DNA from: Scyliorhinus canicula
Taxonomy: Eukaryota
NCBI RefSeq assembly: GCF_902713615.1
Contig: NW_024055443.1
Location: 186,001 to 250,000 of the forward strand
Direction: 5' to 3'
Length of the DNA: 64,000 bases
Under the pieces are notes generated by a model, which was not told the DNA's origin, did no database searches, and worked only from the letters and a program-made list of their open reading frames with translations. Positions 5,720 through 59,748 of this stretch are shown one piece after another. Position 1 is the first letter of the stretch. Each line of letters starts with the position of its first letter. A program made the position numbers and the translations under genes.

Positions 5720-6278
5720 ATGCAGTTATTCAGCGTCTGGATTGTGTTCGGGGTGTTTCTTGTCGGTAAGGATGACTCTGGTCTAATTAAATGTTATCTC
5801 GATCTGAAACGTTAACCCTGCTTCACTCCAGGGACATTGCTGAGTATTTCTGTCTTTATTTGTTGTTATTTCATGTCTCCAATCCTGTCGCGTTTAATGT
5901 AAAGTGTGAATGTTATTTCAGTAGCACACCCAAACCTTAGTTTTATCTCCTTCTTGGTCACATGTTACAGATCCGAGTGATGGAGATTCTGTTTCTCAGC
6001 CGCAGTCATCAACGAGCGGGAGAGAAGGTGATGCGGTGACTGTACCATGTACCTACAGCACTACAGCAAGCAACTATGTGTTATATTGGTACAGACAACA
6101 ACCACAGAAGGAATTGCAGTTCATTATACTGAAACAGTCCTGGGATTCAAAGGAAGCTAGAGGGCAAGGTTTTGGTAACCGTTTCTCTGTTGAACTTCAG
6201 ACCTCGGCTAATTCAATCAGTTTAACCATCTCGAGGTTGGAGCTGACTGACACTGGCAGATATTACTGCGCTTTCACG
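5720..6278 (+). CDS. TRAV/TRDV: TCR alpha/delta variable gene segment, apparently functional (leader exon 5720-5765, intron 5766-5970, V exon 5971-6278)
   Basis: Spliced MQLFSVWIVFGVFLVDPSDG-DSVSQPQ...VPCTYSTT...LYWYRQ...DTGRYYCAFT; GTAAG donor, CAG acceptor, phase 1; Cys23, Trp41 and Cys104 present. Confidence 0.93.
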
Positions 6279-6317
6279 CACAGTGATTAAAAACAGGCTC
6301 ACCCCAGTACAAAAACT
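6279..6317 (+). promoter_or_regulatory. 23-RSS of TCR V
   Basis: CACAGTG + 23 nt + ACAAAAACT. Confidence 0.95.
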
Positions 6318-7344
6318 GTCTCTGAGCTAGAATTCACTGCTCCAGTCTGTTGAGGTTTTCACGGGGAATCACAAGGCGTCACAGCCACATCGAGCAGCGG
6401 CGCTGAGAGCCGCTGAAACACTCAGAGGAAACCACATTAACCTCGAGTCAAACTGTCAGCCAACTGTGTCCAGGGTAGTCTGAGAAAACTAACTGCTAAA
6501 TCTAATCAGACTGAAAGCTTTATCAGAGAGAGTCAAGTTGCCGGCTAAATAGTTCTTATCTCTGTTCGAATCATTATTCCTTCTAATCAGGGTGGGAAGA
6601 TCAGCTCGGCGCATTAAAGATTGCTCCGAGATTTAAAAATCATTCAAAGCTGGCCAACAACACTTCATAAAATACAGACTGCGAGCTGTAACCAGGGAAT
6701 GTGGCAATGGATCCGGGTGGGTGAGGGAGGGTTTGTTTGTGTGTGTGCGTGGTGTGTAAGGGGAGGTCTCCACCTGGCAACGGGAATTACAAAAATTGGG
6801 TGGCAGGAACGAAGAAAAGATAGAACAGATGGGAATGAATGTTTAAAAAGTCCAAGCAGAGAACAGAAAGAACAAACAGCAATTACAATCATTCAGCAAT
6901 ACAAACTGAATGTGACTGAATGAATGGTAGATCTGAGAAATGTACCAGTGTGAACTGATGATAACTGAAATCTATGTTTCCCTATCCCTGTACATACTCA
7001 CTGTTGAAAGCCTGAGCGATGTACCTGTGTAGATGAATGTGGCCGATTGTGTGCATCCAGTGACTAGCTGGACTCAACATTTTGATATCCAGGGTTTGGG
7101 GGATTGAGCTGGTTTAGACATCGTTCAGTGAGTGGATCAGCCCATCCACTGCCTGGGCTCTCTGCTAAACACCTGAGCAACGTCCCTGGCCAGCTGGCCG
7201 AATGAGCCCTCAGCAGCTCACTGCCTGCTGTCTCTCCATGTTTAACAATGTGATTGGCTGCGCTATACAGGTAAGTAACCCTCACTTCCCAACCCGCACA
7301 GATATTATATCAGCTCTTGTCCTGTGCATTTTGGGAGAGCGATA

Positions 7345-7555
7345 AAAGTCATTAACCACCGCTGCCTCATGGTGTAGAGGACCCGGGTTCGATCCCGGTC
7401 CCGGGTCTCTGTCCGTGTTGAGTTTGCACGTTCTCCCCGTGTCTGCGTTGGTCTCACCCCCACAACCCAAAGATGTGCAGGGAAGGTGAATTGGCCACGA
7501 TAAATTGCCCCTTAATTGGAAAAAAGAATTGGGTACTCTAAATTTATTTTTAAAA
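7345..7555 (+). mobile_element. HE1-like SINE
   Basis: GGTTCGATCCC B-box and SINE body shared with other copies. Confidence 0.75.
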
Positions 7556-8326
7556 GGTATTAACAAAGAGGCTGAGCCTCAGCAGAATAGTACACGGAGG
7601 GTCCAGCTGAGGGACAGACACCAAGGGCGGACATTGGGAGAGATGAGTGTTTATAAATGCAGATACATTAGGGGCGATGGTAGTTTGTTGCATTGTCACT
7701 GGACTAGTAATCAAGGCACCCCGGGTAATGCGGAAGATGGCGACATTTCAATTCGGTAAATATATGGAACTAAATATCGCAGATTAATCTGGTTCACTGA
7801 TTTCTTCAGGGAAGGAAAGCCGCCCCCCTCGCCTGTCCTGGTCGACACGTGACGACTGATCCAGTTGACTCTCAAAGCCAAGATACTCATTGTGATGGAC
7901 AATAAATGTTGGCCCACATCCAATGAATGAAATAGTTATATAATACAGACATAATAATAATCTTTAGTAGTGTGACAAGTATGCTTACATGAACACAAAT
8001 TTCCCCAGACCATAATACAATATAAATACGCCTTAAATTTGAAAGAGGTGTGCTTAAGTCCGAGACAATGGTCCAAAATTTAATTCATGCCAATGGTGCG
8101 GGTAAGAAGGACCGATTTTCTAACTTAAATTAGGAAATTAAATTAAGAAGTATGACTGTAGATAAGGAATAAGTAATATTTTTTAAAAACACAATTCTGG
8201 ACGATTACACAGTAACCTGACGAATAATACAGCGTTAGCACTACTGCCTTACATATGATGGACAACTCAGAAAGCTCTGCCAGGAAAACACGGAGAGAGC
8301 TTTCTAAAGACCTGAACTAGGTGCGC

Positions 8327-8960
8327 AGCTCTCTCCGTGCTCTGTGTCACTGTATGTAATCCTCACCATGGTCAGGTTTCTGTACAGCTCTCTCCGTGCT
8401 CTGTATCACTGTGTGTGTAATCCTCACCATGTTCAGGTTTCTGTACAGCTCTCTCCGTGCTCTGTGTCACTGTATGTAATCCTCACCATGTTCAGGTTTC
8501 TGGACAGCTCTCTCCGTGCTCTGTATCACTGTGTGTGTGATCCTCACCATGTTCAGGTTTCTGTACAGCTCTCTCCGTGCTCTGTATCACTGTGTGTAAT
8601 CCTCACCATGTTCAGGTTTCTGTACAGCTCTCTCCGTGCTCTGTATCACTGTGTGTGTGATCCTCACCATGTTCAGATTTCTGTACAGCTCTCTCCGTGC
8701 TCTGTATCACTATGTGTGTAATCCTCAGCATGTTCAGGTTTCTGTACAGCTGTCTCCGTGCTCTGTATCACTGTGTGTGTGATCCTCACCATGTTCAGGT
8801 TTCTGTACAGCTCACTCCGTGCTCTGTATCACTGTGTGTGTGTAATCCTCACCATGTTCAGGTTTCTGTACAGCTCTGTTCGTGCTTTGTGTCCCTGTGT
8901 GTGTAACCCTCACCATGTTCAGGTTTCTGTACAGCTCTCTCCGTGTTCTGTATCACTGTG
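8327..8960 (-). repeat. Tandem array of 23-RSS units (59-63 bp; 10 complete + 1 partial)
   Basis: Unit on - strand CACAGTG-ATACAGAGCACGGAGAGAGCTGT(23)-ACAGAAACC-TGAACATGGTGAGGAT(T/C)A(CA)n; heptamers end at + positions 8960, 8899, 8836, 8775, 8714, 8653, 8594, 8533, 8474, 8413, 8354. Confidence 0.93.
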
Positions 8961-9266
8961 CTGTTCGCTGACTCAGTGCACAGTAATACACAGCGGAATC
9001 GCTCTGTTGTATTTTGGAGATGTTTAATCGGCTGATTCTCTTGACAGGATCGAGAGAAGCAGAAATTCTGCCTCCTGTAGCGTTTTTCTTATTCTCCTCT
9101 CCGGTAGTATGTCTCTGAAGCAGGAAATCCGGAGCTTGTCCTGGGGACTGACGGTACCAGTGTACTGTGTACTGACAGAACCCTGAATATTCCCAGTTTA
9201 AAATAAGTGTGTCACCGGCAGCAGAGTTTTGAAGAGGTGGATTCTTGGACACCAGGGAAGTGGAAT
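8961..9266 (-). CDS. TRDV: Leaderless NAR-TCR-supporting TCR delta V segment; Cys23 replaced by Trp (possible pseudogene)
   Basis: Pyrimidine tract + CAG acceptor at 9267-9269, in phase with the NAR-TCR J; DSTSLVSKNPP...ILNWEYSGFCQYTVHWYRQ...DSAVYYCALSQR; extra CDR1 Cys; no leader exon found upstream. Confidence 0.85.
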
Positions 9267-9369
9267 CTGGAGGATGACAAAAATAAAGATTTTGTCATTG
9301 GTTTAGCCACGTTTACCTGAGGGGAATTTCCTATCCCGCGAATAGCTCCGTTTTTTGCAGTTTGGTAAC

Positions 9370-58483: not shown

Positions 58484-58522
58484 CACAGCGAGAGGAACCA
58501 GGGCTGGACCCGCACAAGAACA
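58484..58522 (+). promoter_or_regulatory. 23-RSS of VH
   Basis: CACAGCG + 23 nt + ACAAGAACA. Confidence 0.88.
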
Positions 58523-58892
58523 GCTCGAGAGAGAATTCAGCAACTTACAGCTTAACCTGAAGGTCAGCACTTGATTCAAATGTAATATTAATGTCAGTGA
58601 TCAGAGTCATTGCACACGCTGCTTCTTACATAACTCACACAGAGAAAATTAAACTGTAAAAGCGAACAAACCAATCGATCTAACAGGATGAGCTTTTGTC
58701 TGTTTATATTTACTGTTCACAGTTTCAGCAATTAGAGACTTGGCTATAATCCTGGTTTTATTATTTCTGATTCTTGGAGAAAGTGTATGTACATTGGGTT
58801 TGATAAACTGCTGTCAAATTGTAAATTAGATCCGAAGTAAACGTGTATTTGAAGTGAATATTGAGCGGTAAGACTGTACAGAGAGTGAGTGC

Positions 58893-58970
58893 AGTTTTTG
58901 TGCGGGTGTCTGTCACTGTGACTACAGTGGGTCACAGTGCTGTGCACAGCGACATCCTCATACAAAAACC
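58893..58970 (+). other. IGHD: IgH D1 (ACTACAGTGGGT, 58921-58932) with 12-RSS and 22-RSS
   Basis: AGTTTTTGT-12-CACTGTG [D1] CACAGTG-22-ACAAAAACC, the classic shark D1 12/22 layout. Confidence 0.93.
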
Positions 58971-59273
58971 TCAGTGAAAGAGCTTGTTCAAATTGGTGAT
59001 CAGCGCCACAACAGGATTGTCAACGTAAATGAATTTTAAATAAAACAAAGTTTGCAAGTAATATTAGTTTGCAAAAAGGTATAAAAATCTTCCACTTTAT
59101 CACTGTCGACCGACTCGCTAAATCTGCACAGAGGGTTTAAAAGTGTTCCGATCCTCTTTAATGACCAGGACAATCTGAAATAACTCGCCTATTCGTTCTT
59201 GGAAGAGACAGAGTTAGCTTTTGGGAGAGCAGTGAAATTAAATATCTGTATTTTATAGTTAACAGTCTGCCGC

Positions 59274-59339
59274 AGTATTTGACACGCTGTGTCTCACTGT
59301 GATAACTGGGGCACAGCAGTTACTATCAATACAAAAAGC
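59274..59339 (+). other. IGHD: IgH D2 (ATAACTGGGG, 59302-59311) with two 12-RSS
   Basis: AGTATTTGA-12-CACTGTG [D2] CACAGCA-12-ACAAAAAGC. Confidence 0.9.
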
Positions 59340-59661
59340 CCCTCAGCACTAATTAACTGAAGCTGGCTCAGTGCTCGCTTTTACAATCCAACTTTATTCA
59401 CAGTGAAGCATTATTTATTTCCAGCACTGACAAAATAATAAGAATTAATTTGGAATATTGGTGGTCGTTATTTAGTCACAGTTGGTGTTTTCAATAACAT
59501 TTCCATGTCTGTGAAATGTAAAACATTCGGTCATTTATGAAGAGAGAACGGTATGCACAAATATTAATATAATTTCCTGGAAATTAATCGTGAATTTTCT
59601 TTGCCATTGGTTTGTGAATATTTAAAATAATGGTGGATTTCTGTCTATTTTGTGCAGGTGC

Positions 59662-59748
59662 GGTTATTGAACGGAGCTGCCCAGGGAATATAACACTGTG
59701 ACTACTTCGACTACTGGGGACAAGGCACCATGGTGACGGTGACTGCAG
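59662..59748 (+). CDS. IGHJ: IgH J segment (59701-59748) with upstream 23-RSS (59662-59700)
   Basis: GGTTATTGA-23-CACTGTG then YFDYWGQGTMVTVTA + G / GTAAG. Confidence 0.95.

Follow-up and report, generated by a model that had tools for sequence, protein, structure and literature searches.

Here, we describe a complete, unrearranged germline VH-D1-D2-JH set on the forward strand (57992-59748), about 2 kb or less overall, in a window that also carries T-cell receptor (TCR) segments; by window we mean the whole 64,000-nucleotide stretch of DNA that was analysed. The set very probably makes up the leading part of a shark IgM heavy-chain mini-cluster of the ordinary germline kind, whose C-mu exons would lie past the right end of the window.

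Anatomy and recombination signals of the heavy-chain cluster

All parts of the cluster lie on the forward strand. The VH leader exon (57992-58049), recognised from the sequence, is linked to the V exon by a GT..AG intron and has four additional residues owing to an in-frame upstream ATG. A TATA-like element, TATTTAAAT, is located upstream of this leader at 57905-57913. The VH exon (58178-58483) is of the IgM type: it has an open frame with the canonical Cys, Trp and YYC residues, ends in ...YYCARW and matches the Pfam V-set domain (E=6e-17). Only four V domains occur in the whole window. The signal scan places the VH recombination signal at 58484-58522, where CACAGCG is followed by a 23-base spacer and ACAAGAACA.

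D1 (ACTACAGTGGGT, 58921-58932) is flanked by a 12-spacer signal on the 5' side (58893-58920) and by a 22-spacer signal on the 3' side (58933-58970), while D2 (ATAACTGGGG, 59302-59311) carries 12-spacer signals on both its 5' side (59274-59301) and its 3' side (59312-59339). JH (YFDYWGQGTMVTVTA, 59701-59748) contains the WGQGT motif, is preceded by a 23-spacer signal (59662-59700) and runs into the donor GT at 59749-59750. The segments are spaced 370-440 bp apart. Altogether, the cluster has six recognisable signals, with spacers of 23 at V, 12 and 22 at D1, 12 and 12 at D2, and 23 at JH. Over the entire window, a relaxed scan for recombination signals returned 20 sites, compared with 1.3 in shuffled sequence.

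A sequence-only reading of this DNA had proposed a canonical shark IgH cluster at this place, and the coordinates it gave for the full VH-D-D-JH set proved accurate. Its additional claim that all recombination signals are intact holds in part. The CAC beside the coding end and the proper spacer length are kept in all signals of the cluster, but a perfect consensus is found in one of them only, the 3' signal of D1, for which the chance expectation is 0; each of the others shows one to three mismatches. Off-consensus elements are the V heptamer CACAGCG, the D2 3' heptamer CACAGCA and the D2 5' nonamer with three mismatches.

The elasmobranch IgM mini-cluster was first described from the horned shark Heterodontus francisci. 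The present cluster resembles the VH-D1-D2-JH-Cmu arrangement of that species in its split leader and in its VH, which is 80% identical to HV01, the classical horned-shark IgM VH; identity to V proteins of Scyliorhinus torazame amounts to 81-82%. With elasmobranch IgM mini-clusters in general, it shares two D segments with 12/22 and 12/12 spacers, 23-base spacers at V and JH, distances of about 400 bp between segments, and a WGQGT motif in JH with the splice donor behind it. It differs from the described mini-clusters in the four extra leader residues, in its several off-consensus signals and in that no constant exons are seen in the window.

Transcripts of the VH family and the constant region

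RNA contigs were taken from four runs picked for high V content, i.e., B-cell rich runs. The splice from leader to V exon (58049>58178, GT..AG) was found in contigs of all four. A cDNA 5' end lies at 57936, and one contig of run X9 has loose adaptor-like letters ahead of this position. In run X10, contigs cover the V exon to a depth of up to about 1e5, as suits an Ig rather than a TCR delta gene. Three runs yielded many joints between V and JH with letters derived from D1 and D2 in between; the D1 portion is D1-like, and in run X11 the exact D2 letters ATAACTGGGG are present inside one joint. At the family level, the V side of these joints stops at 58475-58480, as cutting at the 58484-58522 signal predicts. 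Past 59748, contigs of three runs continue into CGACACCGTCTCCGCCCACTCTCTAC (ATPSPPTLY), the start of a CH1 exon.

The contigs mix paralogues, many of them 95-99% alike, with an A at position 57995 in all and at 58410 in most, and thus V-D-D-J joining and JH-CH1 splicing can be assigned to the family and not to the exact copy in the window. The letters private to this copy are G at both positions and a TGGG coding end at 58480-58483. The family is expressed as VDJ-CH1 transcripts. This exact copy is presumably functional as well.

Neither an Ig-domain frame search nor tblastn with the bamboo-shark CH1 detected an Ig constant exon in the window, which ends 4.25 kb into the intron between JH and the constant exons (59751-64000, forward strand). 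The 4.25 kb past JH without a constant exon would also suit an orphan V-D-D-J that has lost its constant region and is now a relic, or else serves the TCR locus as a V store and is turning into a TAILV-like element. We consider this very unlikely. The absence of constant exons within 4.25 kb is to be expected because the JH-CH1 introns of related bamboo-shark IgM clusters measure 9 kb or more, namely 9.25 kb in L003 and >9 kb in L001 and L004. Moreover, the splice donor at JH is retained, contigs of low depth extend over the first part of the JH-C intron (59820-60800), as expected of unspliced precursor RNA, and a JH of the same type is spliced to CH1. C-mu exons thus probably follow the present mini-cluster, too.

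The peptide ATPSPPTLY, with which the RNA of the VH family continues after splicing, is also found at the start of the first constant exon in a bamboo-shark IgM cluster (L003:21384-21689). In the PDB, this exon has antibody heavy-chain CH1 domains as matches, with E-values from 1e-15 to 7e-21. Downstream gene models in the bamboo shark comprise 468-481 residues with several C1-set domains. A literature search with the CH1 start peptide gave no match. Since the window holds no constant exon, the cluster is called "IgM" on the strength of its V type, its layout and the RNA at the family level.

If the cluster works like an ordinary IgM mini-cluster, RAG would join its four segments in B cells and, obeying the 12/23 rule, would pair V(23) with D1(12), D1(22) with D2(12) and D2(12) with JH(23). 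Transcription of the resulting VDJ exon would be driven by a promoter some 60 bp ahead of the ATG, the leader intron would be excised, and JH would be spliced to C-mu exon 1.

TCR segments and the assembly gap

The left part of the window contains V genes which were classed by comparison with solved structures; searches for named relatives gave a single unnamed match for the NAR V and none for the alpha/delta-type V. A TCR alpha/delta-type V gene occupies 5720-6317 of the forward strand, with a leader (5720-5765), an exon (5971-6278; Pfam V-set, E=5e-18) and a 23-spacer signal (6279-6317; CACAGTG / ACAAAAACT). In the comparison with solved structures, human TCR V-delta-1 and TCR alpha chains came out as its top single-domain matches.

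On the reverse strand, a full NAR-TCR cassette can be traced in the sequence and its translations at 8922-12140. The leader (12140-12098, ATG at 12140) is followed by a NAR V exon (11948-11664), which is a Pfam V-set domain, has shark VNAR as its best structural match (E=1.6e-20) and carries a 22-spacer signal at 11663-11626. Next come a D segment at about 11246-11234 with a 12-spacer signal (11259-11232), a J segment (10881-10829) with a 23-spacer signal (10920-10882) and a donor GT, and a leaderless supporting delta V exon (9266-8961; Pfam V-set) with a 23-spacer signal (8960-8922). The reading frame is kept from the J donor through the acceptor of the supporting V, and the latter has Trp where the canonical first Cys is expected. 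With a leader, a NAR-type V, a D and a J of its own and a leaderless supporting TCR delta V, the cassette has, judged by its sequence, the full layout of a NAR-TCR cassette.

Tandem Repeats Finder reports a 61-bp minisatellite of about 10.5 copies on the reverse strand (8326-8960). The 23-spacer signal that belongs to the supporting delta V recurs in every unit, and eight signal-like matches were found here in the scan. No D-delta, J-delta or C-delta segment was detected within the window. Six long open frames spread over 17.1-40.1 kb gave no Pfam match, and this stretch looks like repeats.

An assembly gap of 388 N, taken from the listing of N-runs, lies at 27674-28061. The sequence-only reading had pointed out that the window is joined from two halves across this gap, and indeed every TCR part is located to its left and every Ig part to its right. 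Its statements that the cluster starts about 46 kb from the NAR-TCR leader, is transcribed divergently from it and shares a scaffold with TCR alpha/delta V and NAR-TCR segments are borne out for the scaffold as assembled: the two leaders lie 45.9 kb apart and point in opposite directions. Because the gap divides all TCR from all Ig parts, the linkage of both in this window depends wholly on the scaffold join.

This clean division raises the question of a scaffolding artefact, in which 28062-64000, including the IgM cluster, and the left half would not be true chromosomal neighbours. Neither a comparison of the 1-kb flanks of the gap with the remaining window nor a self-comparison of the window revealed a repeat, open frame or duplicated segment that bridges the gap, and this is compatible with such an artefact. 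We nevertheless regard it as unlikely. The length of the gap is an estimate and not a placeholder, which in general assembly practice would usually imply spanning evidence, and IgM clusters amid TCR alpha/delta V genes have been published for four elasmobranchs (PMC12227049). The two halves are presumably adjacent.

The VH gene and the antigen-receptor complex

In four elasmobranchs, IgM clusters were reported to be in linkage with TCR alpha/delta V genes and mixed among them, with TCR-type V exons located between IgH clusters (Flajnik et al., Sci Adv 2025; PMC12227049). The window, with an IgM cluster, an alpha/delta-type V and a NAR-TCR V on one scaffold, resembles this elasmobranch antigen-receptor complex of IgM, IgW and IgNAR clusters together with TCR alpha/delta genes. 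As assembled, the cluster would form a part of this complex, in which IgM clusters stand scattered among alpha/delta-type TCR V genes and NAR-TCR cassettes. Compared with the published complex, it is one further example and nothing new, and the link here crosses an unread gap. The cluster is real and ordinary, and an arrangement of this kind is already known, so that the window contributes an example rather than a result. The suggestion that the window represents the IgH/TCRAD boundary is unsupported, as the published arrangement is one of interspersion and not of a single border (PMC12227049).

The sequence-only reading had also raised a second use for the VH, which might serve its IgM cluster and, in addition, act as a cis donor to TCR D-delta, J-delta and C-delta, giving rise to chimeric IgHV-TCR-delta chains. 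By the 12/23 rule, its 23-spacer signal with the CAC triplet is compatible with a 12-spacer D-delta signal, and the scaffold in its assembled form places the VH close to TCR V genes, facing the same way as the V at 5720. As an IgH-type V with a 23-spacer signal amid TCR alpha/delta V genes, it resembles TAILV or VH-delta, the IgH-like V segments of the TCR delta locus. In contrast to these, it is not a lone V, since it has its own D1, D2 and JH within 1.3 kb, and transcripts of its family carry an antibody CH1 exon. The contig joints listed on the V exon all lead to JH and then to CH1, a weak test in B-cell-rich runs. Likewise, V-to-TCR or TCR-delta joints and TCR-type loose ends were absent among the V-exon contigs, yet their absence does not speak against such a joint because B-cell-rich contigs drop rare forms and miss rare chimeras. 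Furthermore, the window offers no D-delta, J-delta or C-delta from which a distance or an orientation could be set. Taken together, we judge this double role of the VH to be improbable, and it is similarly doubtful that TCR D-delta makes use in cis of V genes from bona fide IgM clusters, such as this one, that sit within the TCR alpha/delta V array.

If such V genes were so used, the reported IgHV-TCR-delta chimeras would result from ordinary intrachromosomal rearrangement of dual-use V genes, and neither dedicated TAILVs nor true trans events would be their source. For the mini-cluster itself, provided that the join is real, the window represents another case of antibody and T-cell receptor genes in one shark locus. 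From a biological point of view, such a shared Ig/TCR locus has been invoked to account for IgHV-TCR-delta chimeras, for NAR-TCR and for how the IgH translocon arose.

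Organization of the IgM-type cluster

A search of the window for recombination signals, defined as a heptamer CAC..., a 12- or 23-base spacer (±1) and a nonamer, gave 20 sites, versus 1.3 in shuffles. Exactly four V domains were found by tblastn with V exons as queries. The IgH cluster (57992-59748, plus strand), as read from the sequence and its translation, opens with a VH leader (57992-58049), which is followed by a GT..AG intron and the VH exon (58178-58483). The exon has an open product with the canonical Cys, Trp and YYCAR and is flanked 3' by the signal CACAGCG-23-ACAAGAACA. 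D1 (58921-58932) carries a 12-spacer signal on one side and a perfect 22-spacer signal on the other (CACAGTG...ACAAAAACC; 0 expected by chance), and D2 (59302-59311) has 12-spacer signals on both sides. The JH segment (59701-59748; YFDYWGQGTMVTVTA) is preceded by a 23-spacer signal and followed by a donor GT. With spacings of 438, 370 and 390 bp between the segments, the cluster matches the classical shark IgM layout. Its VH shares 80% identity with HV01 of Heterodontus francisci and 81-82% with V proteins of Scyliorhinus torazame, and the more remote matches are IgH V genes of other vertebrates.

The feature is real and was described correctly by the sequence-only reading: it is the front end of an ordinary IgM mini-cluster. 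The coordinates, the distance of 46 kb to the NAR-TCR leader and the divergent orientation are all confirmed. That all signals are intact holds in so far as every one keeps CAC and a spacer of legal length; perfect consensus is seen in one only.

Constant region and expression of the VH family

No Ig constant exon was found anywhere in the 64-kb window, which extends only 4.25 kb past JH. For comparison, three IgM clusters of the bamboo shark Chiloscyllium punctatum (L001, L003 and L004) were fetched through V homologues. Their JH-CH1 introns measure 9.25 kb in L003 and exceed 9 kb in L001 and L004, where the downstream gene models (468-481 residues) each comprise several C1-set domains. Since these introns are longer than 4.25 kb, C-mu is expected to be missing from the window, and this does not mark the cluster as an orphan. 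The JH-C intron holds a direct repeat of ~360 bp with 69% identity (60175-60528 and 60797-61154). A VH-D-JH exon joined in the germline (L002 10150-10578; ...YYCARDWGGSLHYWGQETMVTVTA) is present in whale shark NC_063338.1; a splice donor follows it, and no CH1 exon was found within 9.5 kb downstream.

RNA contigs of the same organism, from four runs, were aligned to 57800-60800 at a likeness of 96% or better. The leader-V splice (58049>58178) was seen in all four runs. In three runs, many joints connect 58475-58480 with 59700-59712 across 15-35 intervening letters, which include strings derived from D1 and D2, the exact D2 ATAACTGGGG occurring in run X11. These joints are V-D-D-J rearrangements inside an IgM cluster. 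Past 59748, contigs of three runs continue into CGACACCGTCTCCGCCCACTCTCTAC, with the translation ATPSPPTLY. In bamboo-shark L003, the first constant exon starts TPSPPTLYGLVSSC...; its PDB matches are CH1 domains of antibody heavy chains (E=1e-15 to 7e-21), and its start also parallels that of human C-mu-1, SASAPTLFPLVSC. The VH family of the IgM mini-cluster is expressed as VDJ-CH1.

Contig depth over the V exon reaches about 1e5 at maximum in run X10, which is typical of Ig. Low-depth coverage extends over the spacers between V and D, D and D, and D and J, and into the first part of the J-C intron. In one contig of run X9, position 57936 is preceded by adaptor-like letters, which resemble a template-switch oligo; on this reading, a cDNA 5' end would lie at 57936, about 23 bp after the TATA-like TATTTAAAT.

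All RNA contigs have A at 57995, which changes Ala to Thr in the leader, and most have A at 58410; therefore the expressed copies are mainly paralogues or another allele of the IgH cluster. Half of the contigs are only 95-99% alike. As the contigs mix paralogues, expression is shown at the level of the family and not for this VH copy. No TCR sequence was found at the joints or loose ends listed for the contigs of the four runs over 57800-60800; since contigs drop rare forms, the missing TCR-delta chimeras are not evidence against chimeras.

TCR-type genes and the assembly gap

On the plus strand, a TCR alpha/delta-type V gene consists of a leader (5720-5765), an exon (5971-6278; Pfam V-set, E=5e-18) and a 23-spacer signal (6279-6317). 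In comparisons of single domains with solved structures, it is most similar to human V-delta-1 and to TCR alpha chains. The NAR-TCR cassette on the minus strand is complete. It starts with the leader ATG at 12140 and a NAR V exon (11948-11664; ...TYYCKA), whose closest structure matches are shark VNAR domains (E=1.6e-20), and continues with a D at about 11246-11234 and a J (10881-10829; ..LGSGTVVSVTA) with donor GT. In frame behind this J lies the leaderless supporting delta V (9266-8961) with a 23-spacer signal. It reads ...LILNWEYSGFCQY..., with Trp (TGG, 9195-9193, minus strand) at the canonical first-Cys position of the V domain and a Cys present in CDR1. The Trp-for-Cys exchange may be disabling, or it may characterize the supporting V genes of NAR-TCR as a family. 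The adjoining 61-bp minisatellite (8326-8960, minus strand; about 10.5 copies, 91% match) is a repetition of the 23-spacer signal of the supporting delta V, and most units retain CACAGTG and ACAGAAACC.

The only N run in the window, 27674-28061, has all TCR elements on its left and all Ig elements on its right, and the claimed linkage therefore rests wholly on the scaffold join. No element bridging the gap was found in the window, the flanks share no in-register common repeat, and there is no open frame near the gap. Reading frame is moot here, since the DNA around the gap is non-coding: the NAR-TCR leader is 15.5 kb away and the VH leader 29.9 kb. A gap of estimated length would usually reflect spanning evidence. 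The sole large internal duplication, a tandem one (35376-41983 vs 42249-46885, ~6.9 kb, 72-82% identity), is wholly to the right, between the gap and the IgM cluster.

Further repeats are a 242-bp satellite (38110-39069; 4 copies, 98% match) inside the first duplication copy and a 78-bp minisatellite (23584-24293; about 8-9 copies, 91-94% match), the source of long spurious open frames on either strand. Two tRNA genes, both confirmed by ARAGORN and Rfam, are located on opposite sides of the gap: Glu(TTC) at 4860-4933 (minus strand) and Ser(GCT) at 37797-37878 (plus strand).

Relation to the elasmobranch IgH/TCR complex

In elasmobranchs, TCR alpha/delta-type V exons sit between IgH clusters, and NAR-TCR V genes belong to the mapped complex (Flajnik et al. 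2025, PMC12227049). Both the observation of an IgM-type cluster on one scaffold with TCR segments and the inference drawn from it in the sequence-only reading are therefore already in print. Elasmobranch genomes are known for IgM clusters that neighbour TCR V and NAR-TCR genes; in this window the proximity rests on the putative scaffold join across the gap. Nothing in the data examined supports joining of this VH in cis to TCR D-delta, though the 12/23 rule would permit it mechanistically.
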